Source: Hyalangium minutum (GTDB lineage Bacteria; Myxococcota; Myxococcia; Myxococcales; Myxococcaceae). From it: DNA of 64,000 bases. The stretch is taken from the NCBI RefSeq assembly GCF_000737315.1, contig NZ_JMCB01000002.1, positions 670,718 through 734,717 on the forward strand. Direction: 5' to 3'. How positions within the stretch are numbered: position 1 is the stretch's first letter; every line of letters begins with the position of its first letter. The notes under the pieces are model-generated. The model was not told the DNA's origin. It made no database searches and saw nothing but the letters and a program-made list of their open reading frames with translations. Positions 29,869 through 49,172 of this stretch are shown one piece after another. Both the position numbers and the translations under genes were made by a program.

Positions 29869-30120
29869 TGGAGCGGTAGGGTGTCATCCAGTGGAAGAGA
29901 GGGTCCGCAAGTGTAGGTGCGGTTTCCAGCCATGCTGGACGCACGCCTGCTGATCAGGGGGGCTCCAGGCCAGGACGTGGCAAGCGCACACCAGTTTCGT
30001 AGAATCTGGAAGCCTCTTCGGTTGCGTGGCTGACGGGAGTTCCTTGCTCTGTGCCAGCGTGGCTGCTACCTCCGTACAGGCCTGAAAAATTCTGCCATGC
30101 CTGACGGGGGCTGCGTTCGT

Positions 30121-33100
30121 ATGAAGCTCAAGAGCCTGGTGTTGCTGTTACTGGGAGTCTGGGCGGTCAGTGCCTGCGGCGAGGAGACTCGCGCGCTCGA
30201 GACAGAGCTGTCGCCCGAGGCCGTGGCCACGACGAGCCAAGCTGCCCGCAGCACGGACAAGGTGCTCATCCTCGCCAGCAGCGTCAATGGGGGCATGGAC
30301 AGCCGCGAGGCGCAGGCGGTGCGCACCTACTCGCCGTCCACGGAGATCCACGTCAAAACCCCGGACGAGTGGCGCGCGATGACGGCCCAGCAGTTCATGG
30401 AGTACCGCGCCCTCATCATCGGCGACGCGGCCTGTCAGAGCGGCACGGCCGCGCTCGATGCCGCGGTGGAGTCCCGCAGCCGGTGGGGTGCCATCGTCGA
30501 CAGCAACGTGGTGATCATCAGCTCGGATCCGTCCAGCAACAACACCGATTTCCTGGTGGATAACGCGATCAACTCGGTGGTGGTCGACTCGATCCAGTAC
30601 CGCACCGGCATGTACATCGCGCTGGGCTGCGCGTACCAGAATGCGCCAGCCAACACGGTGGTGACGCTGCTGGAGCCGTTCGGCACCTTCAAGGTGCAGG
30701 GAGTCCCCGGCTGCGCGCGGTCCGCGCACATGTTCCAGATGTCCCCGGTCACCCTGTCGAACGGCGTCTATGACGACGCGCTGATTGGCTTGGGGGAGTG
30801 CGCGGCGCGCTCGGTGTTCACCCAGTACCCGGACCACACCTTCTCGCACGCGGCCATTGCCACGAGGACCAGTGGCCCGCCGCTTCCCGGCGAGAAGGAG
30901 TATCTCGACTACCAGATCGATTGGGGCACGCCGACAGCCTTCCACGGAGCTCCTTATGTCCTGGTGCGCGGCGCCATGGCGTGGAGCGCTGGTTGCGGCG
31001 ATCAGGACAACACCCCCGACGGCGAGCAGTGCGATGCGGGTGACGGCACCAATGGCCAGCCCGCGGGACCTGGACAGAGCCCGGATACGACTTGCTCGTT
31101 CGCTTGCCGCCTCAACTGGTGTGGTGACGGCGCCGTGGATGTGGCGCAGGGCGAGGAGTGCGACAACGGCACCGCCAACGGCCGCACGGGCGACGTGAGC
31201 GGCGACATTGGCGCGTGCACCTCGTTCTGCAAGCGCCCCAATATCGCCCCGCCCAACCGTCCCCCGGTGGCGCTGTGCCGCAACGTGACGGTGTCCGTCT
31301 CGAACACCTGCGGCGCGCCCGCGAACATCAACAACGGCTCCAGTGATCCGGATGGGGACCCGATCACCTGCACGCAGAATCCCGCGGGCCCGTACCCCGT
31401 GGGCCCCACGACGGTGACCCTGACGTGCTCGGACTCCCGAGGGTTCGGCTCTTGCTCGGGGACGGTGATGGTGGCGGACTCCGGGGCGCCGACGGTGACG
31501 ATCGATGGTCCGGCCAGCGAGGCCTTGGAGTGCACGCGCGGCGCCACGTACGCGGAGCTGGGCGCCACGGCGCGAGACCTGTGCGAGGGCGCGCTGCCCG
31601 TGAGCCTGTCCGGCTCGGTGAACATGGGCTCGCCGGCCACTTACACGCTGACCTATACGGCGCGGGACTCGGTTGGCAATCAGGGGTCGGCCTCGCGCAC
31701 GGTGGTGGTGTCCGACACGCTGCCGCCGTCCCTCTCCCTGGTGGGAGCGCCCACGATGGCGCAGGAGTGCGGCGTCGCGTTCACGGATCCCAGCGCCACC
31801 GCCACCGACCAGTGCGCGGGGACGCTGCCTGTCACCGTCAGCGGCACGGTGAATGATCGCGTGCGTGGCCCCTACACGCTGACGTACAGCGCGAACGATG
31901 GGCACGGGCACACGGTGTCCAAGGACCGCATGGTGAGCGTGCGCGACACGCGGGCGCCCGTCGTGACAATCACGGGCCCGCTGGGCGTCAATGTGGAGTG
32001 CGGCGGCCCGTACACGGAGCTGGGCGCCACGGCGAACGACCTGTGCGCCGGGCCGCTGGCGGCGCTGCCGACCAGCGCTCCGGAGCCGGCCGTGGTGGGC
32101 GCCTACCCCATCATCTACCAGGCGGTGGATCCCGACGGGAACGTGGGCACGTCGGTCGACAGCCGCACGGTGAACGTGCGCGACACGTTGAAGCCGGTGC
32201 TGACGCTGACGGGCGCCAATCCGCAGCCGCTGGAGTGCGGCACGGCGTGGTCGAACCCAGGGGCCACGGCCCAGGACCAGTGCGAGGGCCCGCTGACGAA
32301 CCGGATCACGGTGAGCGGCTCGGTGGATCACCAAGCGCCGCGGCAGTACACGGTGACCTACAGCGTGAGCGACAGGTACGGCAATACGGAGACGAAGGAT
32401 CGCGCGGTGAGCGTGCGCGACACGCTGCCGCCCGCCATCACAGTGGTGGGCCCGCTGCAGGACTCGGCCGAGTGCGGCTCGACGTACGTGGATGGTGTGG
32501 TGCAGGCCGAGGACGTCTGCGCCGGAACGCTGCCGGTGACGCGGACGGTGGCGGGAGACACGCGGCGTCCGGGCACGATGACCATCGAGTACTCGGCCAC
32601 CGACCCGTCCGGCAACCAGGCCGTGTCGGCGGACCGCCGCACGGTGTCGGTGGTGGATACGCAGGCCCCGGTGCTGTCGCTGCGCGGCACGGCGAGGCAG
32701 CGGCTGGAGTGCGGCACGGCTTTCACGGACCCGGGCGCGGTGGCCACGGACGTGTGCTTTGGGGACCTCTCGGGCTCGGTCACGCTCGCGGGCAGCGTGG
32801 AGCATGGAGCGGTCGGTGACTACACGCTGCGCTACGATGTGACGGATGGCGCGGGCAACCGCGCGGCGCCGGCTGTCCGCACGGTGGAGGTGCGTGACAC
32901 GCTGCCGCCGGTGCTGACGGTGCTGCCGCCGTTCAACGCGCGCGTGCAGTGTGATCATCAGCAGTTCCAGGACCCCGGCGCCACGGCGAGCGACGTGTGC
33001 GCGCTGGACCTGACCGGCTCCATCCAGAGGCAGGGCCTGGTGGACACGGGCCTGCCGGGCACCTACTCGCTGAGCTACCGCGTGGTGGACCCGTCCGGCA

Positions 33101-34980
33101 ACGAGGCCACGGCCAACGCGGCGCGCTCGGTGTCGGTGGTGGATGACCTGCCGCCCACCCTTGAGCTGGTGGGTGCGGCCACCGAGAACGTGGAGTGCGG
33201 CGCGGCCTATACCGAGCAGGGCGTCCGGGCCACCGACCTGTGCTTCGGCGACCTGTCCGACCGCATCGTGCGCGTGGGCCAGGTGGACTCCGCCGTGCCG
33301 AGCGACTACTCCATCGTCTACAGCGTGACCGACCCGTCCAACAACACGGCGAGCACGCAGCGCATGGTGAAGGTGCGCGACACGCTGAAGCCGGTGCTGA
33401 CGCTGACGGGCGCCAATCCGCAGCCGCTGGAGTGCGGCACGGCGTGGGTGAGCCCGGGCGCCACGGCCCATGACCAGTGCGCGGGGCCGCTGACGGCTCA
33501 GATCTCCGTCACGGGGACGGTGGATCATCAGGTGCCGGACCAGTACACGGTGACCTACAGCGTGAGCGATGGACGCGGCAACACGGAGATGCAGGAGCGC
33601 GCGGTGAGCGTGCGCGACACGCTGCCGCCCGCCATCACGGTGGTGGGCCCGCTGCAGGACTCGGCCGAGTGCGGCTCGACGTACGTGGACGGTGCGGTGA
33701 GGGCCGAGGACGTCTGCGCCGGGACGCTGCCAGTGACGCGGACGATCAACGGAGACACGCTGCGTCCGGGCACGATGACCATCGCGTACTCGGCGACGGA
33801 TCCCTCGGGCAATCAGGCCGTGGCGGCGGATCGCCGCACGGTGTCGGTGGTGGACACGCAGGCGCCGGTGCTGTCGCTGCGCGGCACGGCGACGCAGCGG
33901 CTGGAGTGTGGCACGGCCTTCACGGAACCGGGCGCGGTGGCCATGGACGTGTGCTTCGGGGACATCTCGAGCTCGATCACGCAGACGGGCAGCGTGGACC
34001 CTGGCGCCGTGGGCGACTACACGGTGCGCTACGAGGTGACGGACGGCGCGGGCAACCGGGCGACGGCCGCGAGCCGCATGGTGCAGGTGCGCGACACGCT
34101 GCCTCCGACGCTGACGGTGCTGCCGCCGTTCAACACGCGCGTGCAGTGTGACCATCAGGCATTCCAAGATCCCGGCGCCACGGCAAGCGACGTGTGCGCG
34201 CTGGACCTGACGGGCTCCATCCAGCGGCAGGGCTTGGTGGACACGGGCCTGCCGGGCACCTACTCGCTGAGCTACCGCGTGGTGGACCCGTCCGGCAACG
34301 AGGCCACGGCCTCCACGGCGCGCTCGGTGTCGGTGGTGGATGACCTGCCGCCCACCCTTGAGCTGGTGGGTGCGGCCACCGAGAACGTGGAGTGCGGCGC
34401 GGCGTACGTCGAGGCGGGCGTGAAGGCCACCGACCTGTGCTTCGGCGACCTGTCTGACCGCGTCACGCGCGTCGGCGAGGTGAACCCCGCCAAGCCGGGC
34501 GACTACCCCATCGTCTACAGCGTGACCGACCCGTCCAACAACACGGCGACCACGCGGCGCGATGTGGCGGTGAAGGACACGACGCCCCCCACCATCGTCT
34601 GCCCCGACCCCATCGTCGTCGAGGTCCAGCCGGGGATGCAGGCGGACCTCACGCCGGCTGCCGCCCGGGCTACGGACGTGTGCTCTCAGGCGCAGGTGAG
34701 CATCCCCGTGCAGAAGCGCTTCCCGGTGGGCGACACGCAGCTCACGTACACGGCGACGGACGAGGCGGGCAACACCGCCAGCTGCACCACGACCGTCACC
34801 GTTCGTGAGCTCAAGGTGCCGGACCCGGTGCCCGAGCCTCCCAAGCCCGGCCCGTTCGACCGCGCCCTGCTGGGTGGCGGAAGCGGTTGCTCCTCGACGT
34901 CCGGTGGGCCATCGTCGCTGGCGATGATGGGACTCGGAGTGCTCGCGGCCCTCCTGGCCCGGAGAGCCCGGAGGCAATGA
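30121..34980 (+). CDS. Large surface protein: lipobox, globular head, Cys-rich myxobacterial repeat, Ig-like domain, 13 DUF5011-like repeats, HYR-like domain, MYXO-CTERM
   Basis: MKLKSLVLLLLGVWAVSAC; WCGDGAVD..GEECDNG; repeats EC..x..DPGATAxDxC...YxxxDxxGN; C-terminal GGGSGCSSTSGG-TM-RRARRQ. Confidence 0.88.
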   Translation: MKLKSLVLLLLGVWAVSACGEETRALETELSPEAVATTSQAARSTDKVLILASSVNGGMDSREAQAVRTYSPSTEIHVKTPDEWRAMTAQQFMEYRALIIGDAACQSGTAALDAAVESRSRWGAIVDSNVVIISSDPSSNNTDFLVDNAINSVVVDSIQYRTGMYIALGCAYQNAPANTVVTLLEPFGTFKVQGVPGCARSAHMFQMSPVTLSNGVYDDALIGLGECAARSVFTQYPDHTFSHAAIATRTSGPPLPGEKEYLDYQIDWGTPTAFHGAPYVLVRGAMAWSAGCGDQDNTPDGEQCDAGDGTNGQPAGPGQSPDTTCSFACRLNWCGDGAVDVAQGEECDNGTANGRTGDVSGDIGACTSFCKRPNIAPPNRPPVALCRNVTVSVSNTCGAPANINNGSSDPDGDPITCTQNPAGPYPVGPTTVTLTCSDSRGFGSCSGTVMVADSGAPTVTIDGPASEALECTRGATYAELGATARDLCEGALPVSLSGSVNMGSPATYTLTYTARDSVGNQGSASRTVVVSDTLPPSLSLVGAPTMAQECGVAFTDPSATATDQCAGTLPVTVSGTVNDRVRGPYTLTYSANDGHGHTVSKDRMVSVRDTRAPVVTITGPLGVNVECGGPYTELGATANDLCAGPLAALPTSAPEPAVVGAYPIIYQAVDPDGNVGTSVDSRTVNVRDTLKPVLTLTGANPQPLECGTAWSNPGATAQDQCEGPLTNRITVSGSVDHQAPRQYTVTYSVSDRYGNTETKDRAVSVRDTLPPAITVVGPLQDSAECGSTYVDGVVQAEDVCAGTLPVTRTVAGDTRRPGTMTIEYSATDPSGNQAVSADRRTVSVVDTQAPVLSLRGTARQRLECGTAFTDPGAVATDVCFGDLSGSVTLAGSVEHGAVGDYTLRYDVTDGAGNRAAPAVRTVEVRDTLPPVLTVLPPFNARVQCDHQQFQDPGATASDVCALDLTGSIQRQGLVDTGLPGTYSLSYRVVDPSGNEATANAARSVSVVDDLPPTLELVGAATENVECGAAYTEQGVRATDLCFGDLSDRIVRVGQVDSAVPSDYSIVYSVTDPSNNTASTQRMVKVRDTLKPVLTLTGANPQPLECGTAWVSPGATAHDQCAGPLTAQISVTGTVDHQVPDQYTVTYSVSDGRGNTEMQERAVSVRDTLPPAITVVGPLQDSAECGSTYVDGAVRAEDVCAGTLPVTRTINGDTLRPGTMTIAYSATDPSGNQAVAADRRTVSVVDTQAPVLSLRGTATQRLECGTAFTEPGAVAMDVCFGDISSSITQTGSVDPGAVGDYTVRYEVTDGAGNRATAASRMVQVRDTLPPTLTVLPPFNTRVQCDHQAFQDPGATASDVCALDLTGSIQRQGLVDTGLPGTYSLSYRVVDPSGNEATASTARSVSVVDDLPPTLELVGAATENVECGAAYVEAGVKATDLCFGDLSDRVTRVGEVNPAKPGDYPIVYSVTDPSNNTATTRRDVAVKDTTPPTIVCPDPIVVEVQPGMQADLTPAAARATDVCSQAQVSIPVQKRFPVGDTQLTYTATDEAGNTASCTTTVTVRELKVPDPVPEPPKPGPFDRALLGGGSGCSSTSGGPSSLAMMGLGVLAALLARRARRQ
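32176..34569 (+). repeat. Tandem duplication of a 1197-bp block (five Ig-like repeats) inside the surface protein
   Basis: GTGCGCGACACG(T/C)TGAAGCCGGTGCTGACGCTGACGGGCGCCAATCCGCAGCCGCTGGAGTGC recurs at 32176 and 33373, with long near-identical stretches. Confidence 0.9.
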
Positions 34981-36698
34981 TGGGGTGGGCAGGGCTCGCA
35001 GCGATGCGAGCGCGGAAGCGTGTGCAACCAGGTTTGCTGGTCGTGGCCCTCGTGTTTCTGAGCGCCACGGCCTTCGCCCAGCCCGAGGGTGTGCCCACCT
35101 TCGAACTGGAGCTCCTCAAGCTCAACCCTGGCGCCGTGGGCTCCCTGTTGGTGGGCACCGGCGAGCCGCTTCCCGACGGCGACTACCGCTTCTCCCTCGC
35201 TGTCCACTACGAGAACGATCCGCTCCTGCTCTTCGAGAACGGCAAGCAGCTCGGCGCGGTGGTGCGGCACCGGGCCACGACGCACCTGACCGCCGCCTAC
35301 GGTCTGTTTGGATGGCTGGAGGTGGGCGCCCAGCTCCCCGTGGTGCTCATCCAGCGCGGCGATGACCTGACGGACCTGGGCGTGAGCGGGCTCTCGGGAG
35401 GTCCGGCGGTCGGCACCCCGCTGCTCACGGTGCAAGGCCAGTTGCTCTCCCAGGCCAAGAAGGATCACCTGGTGGACCTCGCGCTGGGCCTCCACATGGG
35501 GTTGCCCATCGGCAGCTCCGCGGCGCTTTCCCGGGAGCTGCGGGCCATTCCCAGCCTCATGGTGGGCCGCACCGGTGAGTCCCTCCGCGGCGCCCTCGAG
35601 GTCGGCATGCTGCTGCGCCCTCGCACCGTGCTGACCCAGGACGAGAACGTGCAGGATGAGCTCGGGCATGCGATGCGCTTCACCGGAGGGCTGTCCAGCC
35701 TCGGGCCCCGCCTGCGCGGAGAGCTAGCCCTCAGCACCCTGGTCCCCCTCAAGCGTCAGGGACTCTCCATTGAGGTGCTGGGGGGCGCCCGCTGGCCCGT
35801 GAAGGAGGCCTTCGAGGCGTTCGCTCTGGCGGGCCTGGGCTTTGGCAACGCCCCGGGCACCCCGGACTTCCGCATTCTGCTCGGCATGGCGTACGGCCGC
35901 CCGCGTCCCGCTGCGGTCGAAGTGGCTCCTCCCGTGAAGGAGCCGGAGCCCCCGCCTCCGCCAAAGGACACGGATGGCGACGGCGTCGTGGACGGCGAGG
36001 ACGCGTGTCCGGCGGCCACGGGCAAGCTGGGCATGAAGGGCTGCCCAGATGAGGACAATGACGGTATCGAGGATGGCGGAGACATGTGCCCCACCGAGGC
36101 CGGGCCGGCGGAGCGTCAGGGTTGCCCGCCGAAGGACTCGGATGGCGATGGCGCGCTGGACGAGGTGGACAACTGTCCCACCGAGCCCGGGCCGCTCGAC
36201 CACAGTGGCTGCCCGCCCGCGGACCGCGACAACGACACGGTCGAGGACCTGTCCGACAACTGCCCCGACGAGTTCGGCCCGCCGGACAACCAGGGCTGCC
36301 CGCCGGAGGAGAAGCAGCTGGTCGTCATCCAGCGAGACCGCATCAAGATCAACGACACGGTCTACTTCGACTTCGACAAGGCGACGATCCAGCCGCGCTC
36401 GTTCCCGCTGCTGGACCAGGTGGCGAAGGTCATCCTCGAGCACCCAGAGATCGTCTCGGTGAGCGTCGAAGGCCACACGGACGACTCGGGGCCCGCCGAA
36501 TACAACCGGGGCCTGTCGCAGCGGCGCTCGGAGGCGGTGCGTGACTACCTCATCGGCAAGGGCGTGGCGCCTGAGCGTCTGGAGGCCAAGGGCTACGGTG
36601 AGGATCGCCCCATCGCCTCCAACGCCACCACCGCCGGGCGAGCAACCAACCGTCGCGTGGAGTTCATCACTCGATACTCGGCCTCGGGTGGACAGTAG
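34977..36698 (+). CDS. Outer-membrane beta-barrel + four TSP3 repeats + OmpA domain protein (TraB-like architecture)
   Basis: Signal peptide ...SATAFA-Q; DxDxDGxxDxxDxCP x4; FDFDKATI, EGHTD, LSQRRSEAVR and NRRVEF; ATGA overlap with the upstream gene. Confidence 0.9.
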   Translation: MMGWAGLAAMRARKRVQPGLLVVALVFLSATAFAQPEGVPTFELELLKLNPGAVGSLLVGTGEPLPDGDYRFSLAVHYENDPLLLFENGKQLGAVVRHRATTHLTAAYGLFGWLEVGAQLPVVLIQRGDDLTDLGVSGLSGGPAVGTPLLTVQGQLLSQAKKDHLVDLALGLHMGLPIGSSAALSRELRAIPSLMVGRTGESLRGALEVGMLLRPRTVLTQDENVQDELGHAMRFTGGLSSLGPRLRGELALSTLVPLKRQGLSIEVLGGARWPVKEAFEAFALAGLGFGNAPGTPDFRILLGMAYGRPRPAAVEVAPPVKEPEPPPPPKDTDGDGVVDGEDACPAATGKLGMKGCPDEDNDGIEDGGDMCPTEAGPAERQGCPPKDSDGDGALDEVDNCPTEPGPLDHSGCPPADRDNDTVEDLSDNCPDEFGPPDNQGCPPEEKQLVVIQRDRIKINDTVYFDFDKATIQPRSFPLLDQVAKVILEHPEIVSVSVEGHTDDSGPAEYNRGLSQRRSEAVRDYLIGKGVAPERLEAKGYGEDRPIASNATTAGRATNRRVEFITRYSASGGQ

Positions 36699-36886: not shown

Positions 36887-39800
36887 GTGAAGCTCAAGAG
36901 CCTTGGGGCGTTGTTGGTGTTGGCATGGGTGGCCAGTTCCTGCGGTGAAGAGGTGAAAGAGCCGGGGAGCGACCTCTCGCCGGAGAGGGTGCGTGACACA
37001 CGCCAGGGGGCCCGCAGTACCAATAAGGTTCTGATCCTGGACAGCAGCGTGAGCAGTGGGAACGGGAGCCGCGAGGCCCGCGCCCTCAGGCACCTGGATT
37101 CCAGTGTCCAGATCGATGTGAAGACTCCCGCGGAGTGGCGCGCGATGACGGCCGAGCAGTTCATGGCGTACCGCGCCCTCATCATTGGCGACGGGGCCTG
37201 CCAGAGCGGCACGGCCGCGTTCGACGCCGCGGTGGAGACCCGCGCCAGGTGGGGCGCCATCGTCGACAGCAACGTGGTGCTCATCAGCTCGGACCCATCC
37301 CACAACCGCACCGAGCAGCTCCTGGAGAACGCGCTCAAGTTCGTTCTCGTGGACTCGATCCAGTACCGCACCGGCATGTACATCGCGCTGGGCTGCGCGT
37401 ACCAGAACGCGCCGGCCAACACAGCGGTGGACCTGCTGGAGCCGTTCGGCGCCTTCTCGGTGCAGGGCGTGCCGGGCTGCGCGTCCACGGGTCACATCTT
37501 CCAGATGTCCCCCGTGACGCTGTCCGATGGCCTCACGGATGGCTCGCTGGAGGGTGACGGGTGCGTGGCGCGCTCGGTGTTCACGAGCTATCCGCGCAAC
37601 ACCTTTGCGTTCGCGGCCATCGCGACCGGCACGGAGAGCACGCCGCTCCCCGGCCAGCAGACGCACATCGACTATTGGTACGAGCCGGGCGCGGAGACTC
37701 CCTTTATGGGCACGCCCTTCGTCCTCGTGCGCGGCGCCATGGCGACGAGCGCCGGTTGCGGCGGTGACTCCAACAACGTTCCGTCCGAGGAGCAGTGCGA
37801 CATGGGCGACGTCTACAACGGTCAGCCCAACACCGGTGGCCAGAATCCAAGCGCGACCTGCTCGTTCTCCTGCCGCCTCCACTGGTGCGGTGACGGCGCC
37901 GTGGACGAAGGCGAGGAGTGCGACGCCGGCAGCAACAACGGCCGCTCGGGCGATGCGGACGGCGACATCGGCGCGTGCACCTCGTTCTGCAAGATTCCCA
38001 ACATCCCGCTGCCCAACCGGCCTCCGGTGGCGCGGTGCCGGGACGTGACGGTGGCCGCGACGAACACCTGCGACCGCCCGGCCGACATCAACAACGGCTC
38101 CAGTGACCCGGATGGCGATGACATCGAGTGCACGCAGAACTCAGCCGGCCCGTACACCATCGGCAGCCACACGGTGACCCTGACCTGCACGGACCCGTCG
38201 GGCGACATGGGCATGTGCACGGCCACGGTGACGGTGACGGACTCGGTGGCGCCGGTGGTGACCCTCTTTGGCCCCGCCAGCGAGACGCTGGAGTGCGTGC
38301 GCGGCGTCACGTATGAGGACCCAGGAGCTTCGGCGAGTGATCTGTGCGAGGGCGCGATGCCTGTCACGGTCTCTGGCTCGGTGAACCTGGCGAGCCCCCG
38401 GGGCTACCCGCTGACCTATACGGCCCGGGACGCGTCCGGCAACACGGGCTCGGCCACGCGCACGATCTCCGTCGCGGACACGAAGGCGCCGGTCATCACT
38501 GTGACGGGCTCGGACCGCCTGTCGCACGAGTGCGGCACGCCGTTCATTGACCCGGGTGCCACGGCGAGCGACGTGTGCGCCGGCACGGTGCCCGTCACCG
38601 CGACGCAGTCGGGCAGCTTGAGCCAGCCGGGCACCTTCACCATCTCCTACGCGGCGGTGGATCCGTCGGGCAACCGCACCACCTCGCCCACCGTGCGCAC
38701 GGTGATGGTGACCGATGACACCCCGCCCACGCTGGTGCTGCTGGGCTCGGACAAGCAGTCGTACGAGTGCGGCACGCCCTTCGTCGACCCGGGCGCCAAG
38801 GCCAGCGATCTCTGCGCCGGGGACCTGAGCGGCCAGATTGTCCGCACCGGCTCCGTGGACACCGCCAAGCTGGGCTCCTACACGATCCAGTACTCCGTGA
38901 CGGATCCGTCCCAGCACACGGTGACGGCGAGCCGCCAGGTGTCCGTGAAGGACACGACGCCTCCCAACATCCTGTGCCCCGAGCCCATCGTCGTCGACCT
39001 GAAGGAGGGCGCGCTGGTCAACGTGACGCCGGGGGCGGCGAAGGCCACGGACTCGTGCTCCGAGGCCCGGGTGATCACCCCCACGCAGGCGAGCTTCCCG
39101 CTGGGCACCACGCCCGTGACGTACACGGCGACGGACGAAGCGGGGAACACCGCGAGCTGCACCACGACCATCACCGTGCGCGAGCTCTCGGGGCCGGGCA
39201 CCCCGTCCGAGCCTCCCGGCCGCGGACCCTTCGACCGCGCGCTGATGGGCGGCGGCAACGGGTGCTCCTCCACCAGCAGCGGCCCCTCGTCGCTGGCGGT
39301 GATGGCGCTGGGCCTGTTCGCGGCCCTGGCGTTCCGGAAGCGCACGCAGAAGCGCGGGCTCGCCGTGGCGACGGTGCTCGTGGCGGCCACGGCCACGGCC
39401 CAGGTCGCGGGCGTGCCGACCTTCGATCTGGAGCTGCTCAAGCTGAACCCCAGCGCCAAGGGCTCGCTGCTGCTCGGCACGGGCGAGCTGATGGACCCGG
39501 GTGACTACCGCTTCTCGCTCACCACGCACTACCAGAAGGATCCGCTCGTCCTCTATGAGAACGGCACGGAGATGGGCGTGTTGGTGCGGCATCGCGCCAC
39601 GGCCCACTTGGCCGCCGCGTACGGCGTGAACAAGTGGCTGGAGGTGGGAGCCCAGTTGCCCGTGGTGTTTCTTCAGCGCGGCGATGACCTGACGGGCATG
39701 GGCGTCGGCCAGCCCAAGGGGGGCGTCGCGGCCGGCACGCCGCTGTTCAACGTGCAGTTCAAGCTGCTCTCCCAGCGCGAGGACGACATGGTGGACCTCT

Positions 39801-41008
39801 CGGTGGGGATGCAGGCAGGGCCGCCGATCGGGAGCGCCTCGGCGCTGGCCCAGGAGACGCGCGCCACGCCCAGCCTCATGGTGGGCCACACCTTCCCCTC
39901 GCTGCGCGCGGCGATCGACGCGGGCATGCTGCTGCGGCCTCGCACGGTGCTGACGCAGGATGAGAACGTCCAGGACGAGCTCGGCCATGCGGTGCGCCTG
40001 GGCGGCATGGTCTCCTCGCTCGGCGAGGGCCTGCGCGGTGAGCTCGCCCTCAACACGCTGGTGCCGCTCAAGCGCCAGGGCTTCTCCGTCGAGATGCTGT
40101 CGGGTGCACGCTGGCCGCTGAGCGAGACGGTGGAGGCGTACGGCATGGGCGGCGTGGGCTTCGGCTCCGCGCCGGGCACTCCGGACTTCCGCGTGCTCTT
40201 CGGCGTCGCCTACGGCCGTGCGCGGCCCGCCAAGGTCGAGCTCGCCAAGTACGAGCCGGAACCCGCGCCGAAGGACTCGGATGAGGACGGCATCCTGGAT
40301 GACGCGGATCGCTGCCCGAACGTCGTGGGCCTGCCCGGCTTCCAGGGCTGCCCGGACCGGGATGGCGATGGCCTGGAGGATGAGGCGGATCAGTGCCCAG
40401 CCGAGCCGGGAGCGGTGGAGCGCCGGGGCTGCCCGCAGAAGGACACGGACGGTGATGGCCTCGTGGACGAGGAGGACGCCTGTCCGACCGAGCCGGGCCC
40501 CGTGGAGCGCCAGGGCTGCCCCATCCGGGATCGCGACAATGACACGGTGGAGGACCGCGAGGACAACTGCCCGGATGAGTTCGGTTCGCCGGACAACCAG
40601 GGCTGCCCGCCGGAGGAGAAGCAGCTGGTCGTCATTCAGCACGACCGCATCAAGATCAATGACACGATCTACTTCAACTTCGACAAGGCGACGATCCAGC
40701 CGCGCTCGTTCCCGCTGCTGAACCAGGTGGCGCGCGTCATCCTCGAGCACCCGGAGATCATCTCGGTGAGCGTGGAGGGCCACACGGACGGCCAGGGCTC
40801 CGCCGATTACAACCGGGGCCTGTCGCAGCGGCGCTCGGAGGCGGTGAGGGCCTACCTCATCAGCAAGGGTGTGGACGCCGAGCGTCTGGAGGCCAAGGGC
40901 TACGGTGAGGATCGCCCCATCGCCTCCAACGCCACCAACGCGGGCCGCGCGGCCAACCGCCGAGTGGAGTTCATCACCCGCTACGGCGTGCAGGAGGGGA
41001 AGCAGTAG
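36887..41008 (+). CDS. Fused surface protein: lipobox, head, Cys-rich repeat, Ig-like, 3 DUF5011-like repeats, HYR, internal MYXO-CTERM, second signal-like segment, beta-barrel, TSP3 x4, OmpA
   Basis: N-half paralogous to 30121-34980 and C-half to 34977-36698, one uninterrupted frame; junction GGGNGCSSTSSG-TM-RKRTQKRGLAVATVLVAATATAQ. Confidence 0.88.
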   Translation: MKLKSLGALLVLAWVASSCGEEVKEPGSDLSPERVRDTRQGARSTNKVLILDSSVSSGNGSREARALRHLDSSVQIDVKTPAEWRAMTAEQFMAYRALIIGDGACQSGTAAFDAAVETRARWGAIVDSNVVLISSDPSHNRTEQLLENALKFVLVDSIQYRTGMYIALGCAYQNAPANTAVDLLEPFGAFSVQGVPGCASTGHIFQMSPVTLSDGLTDGSLEGDGCVARSVFTSYPRNTFAFAAIATGTESTPLPGQQTHIDYWYEPGAETPFMGTPFVLVRGAMATSAGCGGDSNNVPSEEQCDMGDVYNGQPNTGGQNPSATCSFSCRLHWCGDGAVDEGEECDAGSNNGRSGDADGDIGACTSFCKIPNIPLPNRPPVARCRDVTVAATNTCDRPADINNGSSDPDGDDIECTQNSAGPYTIGSHTVTLTCTDPSGDMGMCTATVTVTDSVAPVVTLFGPASETLECVRGVTYEDPGASASDLCEGAMPVTVSGSVNLASPRGYPLTYTARDASGNTGSATRTISVADTKAPVITVTGSDRLSHECGTPFIDPGATASDVCAGTVPVTATQSGSLSQPGTFTISYAAVDPSGNRTTSPTVRTVMVTDDTPPTLVLLGSDKQSYECGTPFVDPGAKASDLCAGDLSGQIVRTGSVDTAKLGSYTIQYSVTDPSQHTVTASRQVSVKDTTPPNILCPEPIVVDLKEGALVNVTPGAAKATDSCSEARVITPTQASFPLGTTPVTYTATDEAGNTASCTTTITVRELSGPGTPSEPPGRGPFDRALMGGGNGCSSTSSGPSSLAVMALGLFAALAFRKRTQKRGLAVATVLVAATATAQVAGVPTFDLELLKLNPSAKGSLLLGTGELMDPGDYRFSLTTHYQKDPLVLYENGTEMGVLVRHRATAHLAAAYGVNKWLEVGAQLPVVFLQRGDDLTGMGVGQPKGGVAAGTPLFNVQFKLLSQREDDMVDLSVGMQAGPPIGSASALAQETRATPSLMVGHTFPSLRAAIDAGMLLRPRTVLTQDENVQDELGHAVRLGGMVSSLGEGLRGELALNTLVPLKRQGFSVEMLSGARWPLSETVEAYGMGGVGFGSAPGTPDFRVLFGVAYGRARPAKVELAKYEPEPAPKDSDEDGILDDADRCPNVVGLPGFQGCPDRDGDGLEDEADQCPAEPGAVERRGCPQKDTDGDGLVDEEDACPTEPGPVERQGCPIRDRDNDTVEDREDNCPDEFGSPDNQGCPPEEKQLVVIQHDRIKINDTIYFNFDKATIQPRSFPLLNQVARVILEHPEIISVSVEGHTDGQGSADYNRGLSQRRSEAVRAYLISKGVDAERLEAKGYGEDRPIASNATNAGRAANRRVEFITRYGVQEGKQ

Positions 41009-41022
41009 CAGGCAGGGGTGGG

Positions 41023-41048
41023 GGCCTGGGCCCTTCGGGGCTCAGGCC
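41023..41048. terminator. Bidirectional UUCG-capped hairpin
   Basis: GGCCTGGGCCC-TTCG-GGGCTCAGGCC between convergent genes. Confidence 0.65.
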
Positions 41049-42814
41049 GCCACGAACTGCCGCTCCACCAGCCGGCGGTACAGGCCGTCCTGGCCCATCA
41101 GCGCGGAGTGGCTGCCGCTCTGGACGATCTTCCCGCCCTCCAGCACCATCACCCGGTCCGCATCCATCACCGTGGAGAGCCGGTGGGCGATGATGAGCGT
41201 GGTGCGGCCCTTCATCAGCCGGTCCAGCGCTTCCTTCACCAGGTGCTCGCTCTCGGCGTCGAGCGCGCTGGTGGCCTCATCAAGGATGAGCAGGCGCGGA
41301 TCCTTCAGCATCGCTCGGGCGATGGCCACGCGCTGCTTCTGGCCGCCCGACAGCTGCACGCCGCGCTCGCCCACCAGCGTGTTGTAGCCCTCGGGGAAGC
41401 GCATGATGAAGTCGTGCGCGTTGGCCGCCTTGGCCGCCGCTTCAATCTCTGCCTGGGTGGCGTCCGCCCGGCCGTAGCGGATGTTGTCCGCGATGGAAGA
41501 GGAGAACAGCAGCGGCTCCTGGGCCACCACGCCGATCTGCTGACGCAGCCACTCCGGGTCCAGCGCCTTCAGGTCCTTGCCGTCCAGGAGAATGTGGCCG
41601 CCCTGCGGGTCATAGAGCCGCCCCAGCAGCGAGGCGATGGTGGACTTGCCCGAGCCCGAGGGACCGACGATGGCCACCGCCTCGCCGGGCTCGATGTTCA
41701 GCTCGATGCCCTGGAGCACCGGCACGTCCGGGCGCGAGGGGTAGGTGAAGCGCACGTCCTGCAGCTGCACGCGGCCCTCGGTGTGGGCAAGGCGCTCGCC
41801 GCCCGACATGGGAATGGTGGGCTGGCGATCCATCAGCTCGAAGACGCGCTCGGAGGCGCCGGCGGCCCGCATGAAGTCCGCCCACAGCTCGGTCAGCGCG
41901 CCCAGCGCGAACGCGACGAACATCGAATAGACGAGGAAGGACGTCAGCCCGCCCACGGTCAGCGAGCCATCCACCACCAGCCGCCCGCCGTACCAGAACA
42001 CGGCCGCCGCGGCTGCGAAGCCGCAGAAGGAAGCCACCGCCATGAAGGTGGAGGACTGGCGGATGCGTCTGCGCGCCAGCTCGAAGGCCCTGTCCACCGC
42101 GGAGCGGTAGCGGGCCACCTCGCTCTTCTCCGCCGCGAAGGAGCGCACCGTGCGCACCCCCGAGAGGCTCTCCTCGGCCACCTCATTGGAGTTGGCCAGC
42201 GCGTCCTGCACCTCCTTGGAGAGCTTGCGCACCCCGCGCCCGTAGAACACCGCGCCCACAGCCACCGGAGGAACCACCGCCAGCATCACCAGGGTGAGCG
42301 CCGGGGAGGTGTAGAAGAGCATCGCGATGCCGCCCAGGGCCTGCACCCCGTTGCGCAGCACCATGGAGATGTTGGCGCTCACGGTGTTCTGCAGCACCGT
42401 GGTGTCCGAGGCCAGCCGGTTGGTGAGCTCTCCCGTCTTACGCTCGTCGAAGAAGGCCACCTCCTGGGACATGAGGCTGGAGAACAGCTTCTGCCGCAGC
42501 CGCGTCACCACGCGCTCGCCGGCCGTGGTGAAGAAGTAGTAGCGCAGCGCCACGGCCACGGACTGGATGGCGAAGATGACCGCCATCCCCAGCGCGATCT
42601 GATCGATCATCGCGCGATCCCTCGCGCCCAGCGCCTCGTCGATGATCTGCCGCATCTTCTGCGGGTACAGCAGGCTCATGCCGCTACCGACGACGAGGAA
42701 GAAGGTGCCCGCGATGAGGGTGCGGGTTTCCGGGCGCGCCAGGCTCAACAGCCGGCGCAGCGTCACCTTCTGGGAAACACGAGACTTGGAGGGCTTGGCG
42801 GGGGGCTTTTCCAC
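41042..42814 (-). CDS. ABC exporter, fused TMD-NBD (ABCB/MsbA/MdlB-like), no peptidase domain
   Basis: GPSGSGKS, LSGGQKQR and ILDEATSALD; start taken at GTG 42814. Confidence 0.93.
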   Translation of the reverse strand: MEKPPAKPSKSRVSQKVTLRRLLSLARPETRTLIAGTFFLVVGSGMSLLYPQKMRQIIDEALGARDRAMIDQIALGMAVIFAIQSVAVALRYYFFTTAGERVVTRLRQKLFSSLMSQEVAFFDERKTGELTNRLASDTTVLQNTVSANISMVLRNGVQALGGIAMLFYTSPALTLVMLAVVPPVAVGAVFYGRGVRKLSKEVQDALANSNEVAEESLSGVRTVRSFAAEKSEVARYRSAVDRAFELARRRIRQSSTFMAVASFCGFAAAAAVFWYGGRLVVDGSLTVGGLTSFLVYSMFVAFALGALTELWADFMRAAGASERVFELMDRQPTIPMSGGERLAHTEGRVQLQDVRFTYPSRPDVPVLQGIELNIEPGEAVAIVGPSGSGKSTIASLLGRLYDPQGGHILLDGKDLKALDPEWLRQQIGVVAQEPLLFSSSIADNIRYGRADATQAEIEAAAKAANAHDFIMRFPEGYNTLVGERGVQLSGGQKQRVAIARAMLKDPRLLILDEATSALDAESEHLVKEALDRLMKGRTTLIIAHRLSTVMDADRVMVLEGGKIVQSGSHSALMGQDGLYRRLVERQFVAA

Positions 42815-42893
42815 GGCGCCCAGCCTAACCCTAGACTGGCAGCGGCGCATCGCTTCGTTCGGAGGGCGGGCGGCCACCCGAGCGGTGGCGTGC

Positions 42894-43760
42894 TCACGAG
42901 GGCATCGTGTCGCGGCCGCGCCAGTCCTGTGTGTCTTGACGCGGAGCGTTCACTCGTACCGAGCCATCCTCGGGAGAGCGGGAGAGCATGCGGACCTCCT
43001 CGGCCTGTACGTGCTCCAGCAGCTCGAGCGAGTGCGTGGCGATGAGGATCTGGACAGGTGGCCGCTCCGATGAGCCCCGGGAGAGCTGCCGGAGCAGTCC
43101 CACCAGGTCTCCCAGGGTGCGCGGAGGCAGCCCCCGCTCCGGCTCGTCGAGCGTCAGCACATCTGGCATGGGCACCTGACACGGCAGCACCAGCAGGGCC
43201 AGCAGCAGGAGCACGCTGTCGGCCACCTGCCATGGGGTGAACCACAGGTTCGGCTGCCACCGGTCCCGGAACCGCAGCTGCTGGGAGCGGGGGCCCGTCG
43301 GCTGGAGGCCTACGTCGCTGATATGCGGCACCCACCGGCACAGCTGGCTCACCACCGCCTCCCGCTGCGGCGGCAGGAGCGAGGCGAACACGCTGGCGAG
43401 GTTGTCTCCGTTGGGGCTCAGCGCCGTGGCCCGGGCCAGGGGAGCATCCGAGCGCAGCGCACCCAACTCCAGCGCCAGCCCTTGAACCGCGAACCCCTGC
43501 ATGGCCCACGAGTCCAACCCTACGATCGGAAACACCCGCCTCTGGTGTTGCCCATCCGAGAAGGTGAACTCCATGGCGATCGGCTTCGTCACATCCAGGC
43601 GCCAATGGTCCGAGTGCTCGCAGGAGATGCGGTACTGCATCCCCTCCAGGATGGACGTCTTTCCCGATCCACTGGGCCCCACCAGCACCGTCAACGGAGC
43701 GAGCTTCAGCTCCACATCCCGGAGGCACCGGAAGTTTTCGAAACGGACCGAGCGAATCAT
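42894..43760 (-). CDS. AAA_21/OLD-like ABC-fold ATPase, degenerate signature, no partner gene
   Basis: IRSVRFENFRCL, GPSGSGKTS, LDEPERGLPP and ILIATHS. Confidence 0.75.
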   Translation of the reverse strand: MIRSVRFENFRCLRDVELKLAPLTVLVGPSGSGKTSILEGMQYRISCEHSDHWRLDVTKPIAMEFTFSDGQHQRRVFPIVGLDSWAMQGFAVQGLALELGALRSDAPLARATALSPNGDNLASVFASLLPPQREAVVSQLCRWVPHISDVGLQPTGPRSQQLRFRDRWQPNLWFTPWQVADSVLLLLALLVLPCQVPMPDVLTLDEPERGLPPRTLGDLVGLLRQLSRGSSERPPVQILIATHSLELLEHVQAEEVRMLSRSPEDGSVRVNAPRQDTQDWRGRDTMPS

Positions 43761-43968: not shown

Positions 43969-47991
<4,023 letters not shown>

Positions 47992-48003
47992 GCCGAGACG
48001 GGC

Positions 48004-49164
48004 TCAGCCCTCGATTCCATAGAACCGGGCGGGGTTGTCCCAGAGGAGCTTGCGCATCGTCTCCTCGGGCAGCACCGAGCGCAGCTCCATCACGTGGTCC
48101 ACGATGTCCTCCCCGTGGTCCGTGTGTGGGTAGTCGGTGCCGAACACCAGGTTGTCCGTGCCGATCATCCGGATGAGCTCCTGGAGGCCCGGCTCGCCGG
48201 GCTCGATGGCGACGACGCAGTGGCGGCGGAAGTACTCCGAGGGCTTCATGCGGACGTTCTCCGACACCTCGCCCTTCATGTACTCGTAGGTGGAGTCCAT
48301 GCGCCACAACCAGTAGGGCAGCCACCCGCAGCCGGACTCGAAGAAGCCGATGCGCAGGCGCGGGTGGCGCTCCAGCACGCCACCCTCGAGGAGGGAGGCG
48401 AGGGCCAACATGGCCTCCAGCGGGTGCGAGGCGGCGTTGTGGGCGAAGCGGGTGGTGAAGCGCTCCGCGCCCGCTGAGGGCAGCCGCACATTGGAGCCCT
48501 CGTGGAGGGCCACACCGATGGAGTGGCGCTCGCAGGCGGCCCAGAAGGGCTCGTAGGCGGGGTGGCCGAGTGTTCGGCCATTCACGGGGTTGGGAGGGAC
48601 GGCCACGGCCTTCCAGCCAAAGCGGGCCAGGCGCTCCACCTCGCCCGGCAGCACCTCGGGCTCGTGCAGACACAGGGCGCCTACGGCCCGGAGGCGCTGA
48701 GGGTTCGCGCTGCAGAAGTCGCGCAGCCACGCATTGTAGGCGCGGGCGAAGGCAGTGGCCCGGGTGGGCTCCATGCCGTCGATGCGCAGAATGAACAGGG
48801 CCATGGTGGGGAAGAAGCAGGCGGCATCCATCCCCGTCTGATCCATGGTCCGCAGGTGGTGCGAGGGGCTGACGGTGGACTCATAGGCCACGGTCCGCTG
48901 CGCGGCGGCCCAGGCCATCTCCACCTGGGTCCGCTCGGAGAGCCGCTGCCACGCGGGCTGCCCATCGATCATCAACGTGGGAGTGATGGGCAGCATCCCC
49001 TTGGGCCCCAGCCGCGCCACACGCTGCTCCAGTGTCTCCTCGGGAGCGATGAGTTGTTCGTAGGGGGCGCCCGCCCGGTACTCGGGGGGCAAATACTCCT
49101 TCCACATCTCGATGGGCTCAATGACATGGCGGTCCGAGTCCACCATCCGCAGTCCTTCACGCAT
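48004..49164 (-). CDS. Amidohydrolase_2 family metalloenzyme
   Basis: VDSDRHVIEP, ALHEG, FFESGCGW and FGTDYPHTD; 8 nt after the YcaO gene. Confidence 0.88.
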   Translation of the reverse strand: MREGLRMVDSDRHVIEPIEMWKEYLPPEYRAGAPYEQLIAPEETLEQRVARLGPKGMLPITPTLMIDGQPAWQRLSERTQVEMAWAAAQRTVAYESTVSPSHHLRTMDQTGMDAACFFPTMALFILRIDGMEPTRATAFARAYNAWLRDFCSANPQRLRAVGALCLHEPEVLPGEVERLARFGWKAVAVPPNPVNGRTLGHPAYEPFWAACERHSIGVALHEGSNVRLPSAGAERFTTRFAHNAASHPLEAMLALASLLEGGVLERHPRLRIGFFESGCGWLPYWLWRMDSTYEYMKGEVSENVRMKPSEYFRRHCVVAIEPGEPGLQELIRMIGTDNLVFGTDYPHTDHGEDIVDHVMELRSVLPEETMRKLLWDNPARFYGIEG

Positions 49165-49172
49165 GGGAGCAC

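Follow-up and report, generated by a model that had tools for sequence, protein, structure and literature searches.

Kin recognition and outer-membrane sharing in social myxobacteria are governed by MYXO-CTERM proteins and by the TraAB system. MYXO-CTERM proteins are transported by Sec across the inner membrane, in which they are held by the helix of their sorting tag with an arginine-rich tail in the cytoplasm, and are then probably lipidated on the cysteine, cut by the CPBP protease MrtX, a myxosortase, in a Cys-dependent manner, and carried on to the cell surface through the type II system (PMC11980579). Internal MYXO-CTERM motifs are rare in open reading frames (ORFs); the one case described, MXAN_5598 of M. 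xanthus, combines an adhesin, an internal MYXO-CTERM, an outer-membrane barrel and OmpA, has been likened to TraA plus TraB, and has been proposed to undergo processing and surface anchoring of its N-terminal part (mBio 2025, PMC11980579). MXAN_5598 also figures among the outer-membrane-vesicle cargo tabulated in a proteomics study (PMC4158809). A gene of this kind lies in a stretch of 64,000 nucleotides (nt), referred to here as the window, which is part of contig JMCB01000002.1 of Hyalangium minutum DSM 14724T (family Archangiaceae, Myxococcota; assembly GCA_000737315.1; PMC5441343). It is a fused ORF of 1373 amino acids (aa) on the forward strand (36887..41008; the public gene call is identical), in which an adhesin runs in frame through a MYXO-CTERM tag into a barrel protein. 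This ORF is probably a genuine conserved gene that makes a TraA/TraB-like surface module as one precursor to be cut twice, and the neighbouring split gene pair derives from the fused form.

Compared through the published description of MXAN_5598, the window gene has the same arrangement of a large N-terminal adhesin, internal MYXO-CTERM, barrel and OmpA in one ORF. The architecture is already published, together with a proposed processing (PMC11980579), which makes the novelty lower than an earlier note on this DNA had assumed; the window gene adds to a barely studied kind. The two loci differ, as MXAN_5598 belongs to a cell-division cluster beside ftsA/ftsZ whereas the window gene stands beside a split paralog pair, an ABC exporter and a TOMM cluster. 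A candidate ortholog of MXAN_5598 (P0137) was discarded since it adjoins corA and gyrA, not ftsA/ftsZ. The paper on MXAN_5598 suggests a fusion of two genes and makes no mention of an internal signal-peptidase site, whereas the evidence from the window clade points to fission. New here are a mechanism for the fission, a measure of how far the family extends, and a conserved internal signal-peptidase site whose basic patch also belongs to the sorting tag.

The junction of the fused ORF translates as FDRALMGGGNGCSSTSSGPSSLAVMALGLFAALAFRKRTQKRGLAVATVLVAATATAQVAGVPTFDLELLKLNP in a single frame and without a stop codon, in agreement with the earlier claim of a mid-protein MYXO-CTERM continuing into the barrel. 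The coordinates that had been given for it (39248-39403) are exact, 39248 being the first G of the GGGNGC motif (G788) and 39401-39403 the codon of Q839. The internal MYXO-CTERM (39248..39355, forward strand) consists of the glycine-rich motif GGGNGC with Cys793 (39263-39265), the hydrophobic helix SGPSSLAVMALGLFAALAF and the Arg/Lys cluster RKRTQKR. Both models of the tag match above their cut-offs: TIGR03901 with 22.4 bits in a 98-aa fragment and 26.4 bits in a 35-aa segment (cut-off 20), and TIGR03382 with 21.0 and 24.7 bits, respectively (cut-off 15.85). An N-terminal secretion signal, expected on the same protein, is present as a pattern match to a lipobox-like end, VKLKSLGALLVLAWVASS/C (here and below the slash marks a predicted cut). 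The tag does not occupy the extreme C-terminus at which it is normally expected: 551 residues follow the basic patch. The patch also belongs to a second signal, a signal-peptide-like segment (39335..39400, forward strand) with RKRTQKR as n-region, the 12-aa h-region GLAVATVLVAAT and the c-region ATA, after which signal peptidase I is predicted to cleave (A838/Q839, between 39400 and 39401). A positive n-region, an h-region within the range of about 7-15 residues and small residues at -3 and -1 (A-T-A/Q) are the features of a Sec-type signal peptide. The 7-residue RKRTQKR loop is thus common to the MYXO-CTERM tail and to the n-region of the next signal. In addition, in an alignment with about 60 stand-alone homologs, the predicted cut falls at the position where their N-terminal signal peptides are cleaved (e.g., ...LLLASAALA/QPAG and ...TGATALA/QPAG), and the mature parts of these homologs all open with Q-P-x-G-[LV]-P-x-[FV]-E-L-E. 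Cleavage at A838/Q839 by signal peptidase I is therefore inferred from sequence features and homology.

The split pair upstream, paralog A, shows the same parts on two polypeptides. Its adhesin gene (30097..34980, forward strand; ORF start at 30097, likely start MKLKSL at 30121, stop TGA at 34978-34980; 1619 aa in the public gene call) ends with ...GGGSGCSSTSGGPSSLAMMGLGVLAALLARRARRQ-stop and carries a terminal MYXO-CTERM (34873-34974, forward strand; TIGR03901, 22.9 bits). The barrel-TSP3-OmpA gene (34977..36698, forward strand) starts with an ATG at 34977 that overlaps the adhesin stop as ATGA, or alternatively at 35004 (MRARKRVQ...), and encodes the signal peptide MRARKRVQPGLLVVALVFLSATAFA/QPEG, as quoted in the earlier note. 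The mature barrel parts of paralog A and the fused copy are 70% identical and colinear from the Q onwards. Aligned as DNA, the fused junction lacks 53 nt relative to the split one, in gaps of 41 and 12 nt, and as 53 mod 3 = 2 the barrel frame is in register with the adhesin frame in the fused gene. In this alignment the basic-patch DNA of the fused junction (CGGAAGCGC...AAGCGCG) corresponds to GCGCGGAAGCGTG in the n-region of the partner, and in the fused protein the patch lies between the MYXO-CTERM helix and an h-region of signal-peptide type, which upholds the proposal that one basic patch serves both signals. The public call of the paralog A barrel gene (551 aa, start MALVFLSATAFAQ) begins within the signal peptide and drops the basic n-region; a start at 34977, with the ATGA overlap, or at 35004 (MRARKRVQ) is a better fit.

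The fused layout is conserved across many Myxococcota. A contig scan with a single barrel sequence gave no relative, and its repetition with a barrel alignment (A2) retrieved relatives, the fused junction being present in 5 of the 26 genome loci found in this way (L005, L006, L007, L008 and L010, the last being the isolate Hyalangium versicolor) as well as in the complete metagenomic genes P0002 and P0088. A full-length colinear ortholog (P0121), 81% identical, is found on two independent Joint Genome Institute (JGI) metagenome contigs. P0001 starts at a contig edge, which is consistent with a fused gene and no more, and P0006 was left unclassified as fused or split. A profile of the junction, compared with 1.84 billion representative proteins, gave 255 matches. 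Among the best 150 of these 255, 20 clusters (50% identity) are long proteins of 248-2991 aa in which the match spans the MYXO-CTERM and lies inside the protein. The parts follow the same order in the sequences of all 20 fused clusters, while the adhesin parts are mutually unrelated and include Ig-like/HYR, Big_13-type, tandem-95, Kelch plus HYR and PA14 types. These clusters derive from Hyalangium gracile, Archangium violaceum, A. lansingense, A. gephyra and uncultured Myxococcota, and fused orthologs are found in the isolate genomes of H. versicolor, H. gracile, Archangium violaceum and A. lansingense, finished Archangium chromosomes included. In public databases these proteins are named only OmpA family, Ig-like or kelch repeat, and a junction profile would improve the annotation of proteins now filed under such names. 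With a draft genome assembly and a net difference of 53 nt between the fused junction and that of the split paralog, one could suspect that the junction reflects faulty sequencing or assembly, or that two genes were recently joined by a deletion that left an inactive ORF. This explanation is scarcely credible in view of the recurrence of the same in-frame junction in the 81% identical ortholog on two independent contigs, in the five genome loci and in the finished Archangium chromosomes, with a conserved junction length and with a GC content at third codon positions (GC3) of 0.92 throughout the ORF. An artefact is effectively excluded, and the sequencing error hiding a stop or frameshift, which the earlier note had named as fatal to its claim, is not borne out.

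An alignment of the 20 fused junctions has a mean column identity of 41%; the cysteine is invariant, and the two flanking glycines, the first arginine of the basic patch and the alanine at -1 are each at least 90% conserved. The +1 residue is glutamine in most of them, and the basic loop, the short h-region and small-x-small/Q are kept in nearly all. The closest members have a first helix of 16-19 residues, a loop of 5-14 residues with a net charge of +4 to +6, and a second hydrophobic stretch of 12-14 residues, which is too short for a stable membrane helix; in distant clusters the loops reach about 25 residues. The junction segment from DRAL to PTFDL is exactly 66 residues long in the three closest fused loci and 65 in L006. 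These data bear on the idea that the second hydrophobic segment would stay in place as an uncleaved transmembrane helix and that the whole would be a two-pass inner-membrane protein with a periplasmic, peptidoglycan-bound C-terminal part. OmpA-like domains do occur on inner-membrane proteins such as MotB. This topology is nevertheless quite improbable, given that the h-region of only 12-14 residues is followed by the conserved small-x-small/Q, that the 270 downstream residues model as a 12-strand outer-membrane barrel and that the paralog sharing 70% identity with the barrel part has a signal peptide of the usual N-terminal kind.

A different origin for the barrel protein would be internal initiation at the Met of the first helix (M806, ATG at 39302-39304) or at a nearby start, so that the long ORF would represent two overlapping genes and signal peptidase would not have to cut a polyprotein. 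The split form does use the homologous ATG(ATG) as start of its barrel gene, and a Met is found at the helix position in the close fused relatives L005, L006, L008, L010, P0001 and P0121; against this, L007 has a Val at that position, the distant fused clusters lack a conserved helix Met, and inspection of the sequence upstream brought up no purine run resembling a ribosome-binding site. Internal initiation is an unlikely source of the barrel, and its product would still require the same AxA cleavage; this reading is compatible with the polyprotein route.

Double cutting by a myxosortase and signal peptidase I can be inferred as the best and most economical reading of this junction. In the proposed pathway, the N-terminal lipobox-type signal would direct the adhesin through Sec until the MYXO-CTERM helix halts transfer. 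The RKRTQKR patch would remain in the cytoplasm, where it would double as tail of the MYXO-CTERM and as n-region of the next hydrophobic segment, and the 12-residue h-region would then re-enter the translocon and carry the barrel-TSP3-OmpA part across. Signal peptidase I would cut after ATA (A838/Q839) and free the barrel protein, which would be inserted in the outer membrane by the barrel-assembly machinery and bind peptidoglycan. The adhesin would end at the surface, if the published MYXO-CTERM pathway is applied to the fused protein, and a hairpin peptide of about 45 residues would remain in the inner membrane. The outcome would be adhesin and partner in equal amounts and in the same place. 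The mature adhesin might be lipidated both at its N-terminal Cys and at the MYXO-CTERM Cys. The hairpin with two cuts put forward in the earlier note stands in this form, backed by the homology of the cut site and by the -1 Ala conserved in at least 90% of the 20 fused proteins; the description of the polyprotein as self-splitting was a misnomer, as host enzymes would make the cuts.

In a reduced version of this pathway, only signal peptidase I would cut, the internal MYXO-CTERM would go unprocessed by the myxosortase, and the adhesin would be held in the inner membrane by the hairpin or reach the surface inefficiently. This variant takes some strength from the fact that all characterised MrtX substrates bear the tag at the very C-terminus, and from the observation that in mrtX mutants some uncleaved TraA is still found at the surface (PMC11980579). 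It has little probability, as the invariance of the G-rich Cys motif in 20 fused clusters with only about 41% column identity would be hard to explain if the motif were unused, and as the signal peptidase cut would itself leave the tag C-terminal again save for about 22 extra residues. Moreover, sorting tags can work in the middle of a protein: internal LPXTG and PGF-type tags are reported to be processed (refs 45 and 46 of PMC11980579), the latter in an ArtA substrate of Haloferax. This Haloferax volcanii substrate (ref 46 of PMC11980579) resembles the window protein in being a natural protein with a mid-protein signal made of motif, helix and basic patch that is still processed by a sortase-like enzyme. 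A family that makes receptor and OmpA-type partner as one chain offers a system for studying 1:1 coupling, and provides a natural test of myxosortase on a non-terminal tag and of signal peptidase I on an internal bacterial signal. The Haloferax protein, reportedly the subject of Abdul Halim et al. in 2017, is said to be an archaeal Tat substrate handled by an enzyme family other than myxosortase, and we know of no second secretion signal or second exported domain after its tag. For the second cut, a precedent is reportedly given by FbcH, the cytochrome b/c1 polyprotein of Bradyrhizobium japonicum (Thony-Meyer and colleagues, about 1989-1991), a single ORF said to be split at an internal signal peptide by leader peptidase into two envelope proteins. 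FbcH is unrelated in sequence to the window gene; it is said to belong to the respiratory chain, to lack a sortase-type tag and to leave both products at the inner membrane.

The relationship between the fused gene and the split pair was suggested by a scar at the split junction. A decayed tandem duplication was located at 34924..35029 (forward strand) by comparison at fixed offset, with two 53-nt units that each start with ATGATGG (at 34924 and 34977). Unit 1 encodes the MYXO-CTERM helix and tail (MMGLGVLAALLARRARR), and unit 2 the N-terminal extension of the barrel gene (MMGWAGLAAMRARKRVQ). The units are identical at 29 of 53 positions, compared with a null mean of 15.4 (sd 3.3), a level reached by 0.07% of the 53-mers of the window. 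In two other split junctions, those of L003 (a JGI contig) and L007, the first gene ends with ...ALAMMGLAVLAALLARRR-stop and the second opens with MMGLAVLAALLRK[RH]VRPGLL...A/QPEG, its start overlapping the stop as ATGA, and a direct-repeat search detects in both a 36-nt repeat, GGCGATGATGGGGCTGGCAGTGCTCGC.GCCCTGCT, with 89-92% identity and 44-nt spacing. The 53-nt unit of the window equals the 44-nt one enlarged by an insertion of 9 nt in the tail. The claim of a scar in the window rests on the fixed-offset comparison together with the clear 44-nt repeat of these orthologs; the same direct-repeat search finds no repeat at the fused junction. A 44-nt tandem duplication of the helix-plus-tail segment (44 mod 3 = 2) would shift the frame such that ...AGG AGG CGA TGA ends the adhesin right after its basic tail, while the barrel gene, still in its original frame, would start from the ATGATG of the second copy, TGA stop and ATG start being created together. 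Conversely, taking out one 44-nt unit restores an in-frame fused gene. A single small tandem duplication would thus supply both codons, stop and start, and couple the translation of the two genes in one event, and split and fused paralogs standing side by side with a scar make this a cleanly documented example of gene fission.

Phylogeny points in the same direction. In a neighbour-joining tree of 71 barrel domains, the genes with a split scar (window A, L003, L007A, P0007 and P0008) form one clade within an otherwise all-fused group. Bootstrapping (200 replicates, 29 taxa) recovers the split clade in 199/200 replicates, its grouping with the B-type fused genes in 157/200 and this grouping enlarged by two further fused groups in 122/200. 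The nesting of the split-scar clade among fused genes and the duplication scar argue that this clade started out from fused genes and that fission gave rise to the split pair. The direction implied by the word fusion in the earlier note is thereby reversed. The locus L007:1-6978 (Hyalangium sp. metagenome-assembled genome SMAG_U11958) contains adhesin A, barrel A with the 44-nt repeat and fused gene B in the same order as in the window, and therefore the duplication of the paralogs and the fission predate the split of the two Hyalangium lineages. The split pair of L027 bears no repeat scar, so not all split pairs are explained by tandem duplication. A much wider proposal, which is doubtful at present, is that a single-chain precursor was ancestral to the whole TraA/TraB-like adhesin-plus-barrel family and that two-gene operons with an ATGA overlap, canonical traA-traB included, came about when tandem duplications spanning its hairpin shifted the reading frame; the polyprotein route would then serve the equal delivery of receptor and barrel through the same translocon, and the released peptide of about 45 residues, the hairpin, might also have a function. 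A query for the traA-traB junction with the TraA MYXO-CTERM peptide from PMC11980579 gave no candidate.

Several points weigh against a twice-cut precursor with a fission-derived split pair. For the window protein and the other family members alike, both cuts are predictions, and that of signal peptidase I is derived from the -3/-1 rule and from homology. The pathway needs MrtX to accept a tail that continues into a second helix, and no CPBP protease (myxosortase) was found among the ORFs scanned, a scan limited to the window. The TIGR03901 score barely exceeds its cut-off. Constraint on the junction sequence is only moderate, with a ratio of nonsynonymous to synonymous polymorphism (pN/pS) of 0.4-0.8 from DRAL to PTFDL in the closest fused loci, a pattern that is expected of signals constrained by their character and not by exact sequence. 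As for fission, the scar is weak in the window, where the direct-repeat search did not detect the 53-nt repeat, and the deeper nodes of the neighbour-joining tree have moderate support, monophyly of the fused B group (9/200) being unsupported.

The likeness to TraA/TraB, which underlies the interpretation of the module, lies in the combination of a MYXO-CTERM surface receptor with a TSP3/OmpA partner, and extends to the gene overlap of the split pair (34977-34980), as traA and traB also overlap by 4 bases (PMC3325183). The TraB model NF033763 is the top NCBIfam match of the barrel parts, with 264.5 bits for the fused copy and 268.3 bits for paralog A, and ten other family members score 134-291 bits. 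These values are far under the cut-off of 700, and the barrel part therefore belongs to a TraB-like paralogous family and is not TraB. The layout is that of TraB, with TSP3 repeats and a C-terminal OmpA after a long N-terminal region that models as a 12-strand barrel. Match to the TraB model and the shared 4-base overlap agree with the functional link to the split copy that had been drawn earlier. On the adhesin side, neither PA14 (Pfam) nor the TIGR04201 Cys-repeat (NCBIfam, aa 1-470), the features of TraA, was found in the fused adhesin; a Cys-rich module is visible by eye and matches no model. TraA and TraB are two polypeptides whereas the fused product of the window is one, with a stalk of Ig-like/HYR repeats. 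The nearest thing seen to a single-chain TraA-plus-TraB is P0136 of Archangium gephyra (PZR11829.1, 2650 aa), a fused protein whose N-terminus is called a PA14 domain in its source record and precedes a Cys-rich repeat.

From its N-terminus, the fused protein consists of a lipobox-type signal, a head domain, a Cys-rich module, Ig-like/HYR repeats, the internal MYXO-CTERM, the internal signal peptide, the barrel, TSP3 repeats and OmpA. The signal (36887..36943, forward strand) ends in the lipobox-like pattern before C19. The same kind of pattern is found in paralog A, L005, L007, P0002, P0124, P0122 and P0102, and all adhesins of the family open with a signal ending [AVI][SA][SA]/C (36887-36943 in the fused gene, 30121-30180 in paralog A). 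A conserved head of about 250 aa (KVLILxSSVxGG..., with an alternating strand-helix pattern) and the Cys-rich module follow at 37019-38011 (aa 45-375; 30250-31260 in paralog A). No Pfam or NCBIfam model matched head or Cys-rich module, NCBIfam giving no family for aa 1-470, and an AlphaFold2 model of the head built on a 3-sequence alignment was discarded (predicted local distance difference test score, pLDDT, of 38). The stalk of Ig-like and HYR repeats (aa 377-764; 38015..39178, forward strand) is matched by Big_9 (Pfam), by Bact_surface_Ig-like in 3 stretches (151.7 bits) and by HYR (73.7 bits).

Downstream of the junction, the predicted 12-stranded outer-membrane beta-barrel (39401..40222, forward strand) is an AlphaFold2 model of the 270 residues after Q839, with 12 strands, a pLDDT of 80.3 and a predicted template modelling score (pTM) of 0.78. 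Its closest folds in PDB are FapF and a COG4313 channel (TM-score about 0.6, E-value 5.6e-10), with which it shares 12-16% sequence identity, so that the resemblance is one of fold only and allows no transport function to be inferred. Both are 12-stranded barrels and FapF is an amyloid-subunit transporter, which hints that the partner barrel could be a conduit beyond a role as anchor alone. The thrombospondin type 3 (TSP3) repeat linker (40271..40624, forward strand; Pfam TSP_3, 38.8 bits) lies inside the part matched by the TraB model, and the OmpA-type peptidoglycan-binding domain (aa 1262-1358; 40670..40960, forward strand) matches Pfam OmpA (PF00691) with 79.8 bits against a gathering score of 27.2. 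The metagenomic gene P0088 (L004:10001-11452) encodes a short complete member of 483 aa with a Big_13-type adhesin, internal MYXO-CTERM, internal signal and barrel. It has neither TSP3 repeats nor OmpA, so that some members can do without the peptidoglycan anchor.

The window has an overall GC content of 68%, and its ORFs were judged coding from third-position GC. The adhesin gene (30097-34980), the barrel-OmpA gene (34977-36698) and the fused ORF (36887-41008) are three large ORFs in a row on the same strand. A scan for promoters and terminators placed a lone weak promoter-like site ahead of them (29977-30005) and no terminator-like site between them, a result that is consistent with one operon and is not evidence for it. 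Their neighbours are housekeeping genes, an ABC exporter and a TOMM-type kinase/cyclase with YcaO. Directly 3' of the fused gene, on the opposite strand (41042-43760), lie an ABC exporter with membrane and ATPase domains and an AAA_21/AAA_15 ATPase, and the public annotation places the same two genes there. Next comes a natural-product cluster of TOMM type (43969-51383), which is composed of a kinase/cyclase fusion protein (43969-47991; TIGR03903, 1413 bits) and, on the reverse strand, an amidohydrolase (48004-49164) and a YcaO cyclodehydratase (49173-51383).

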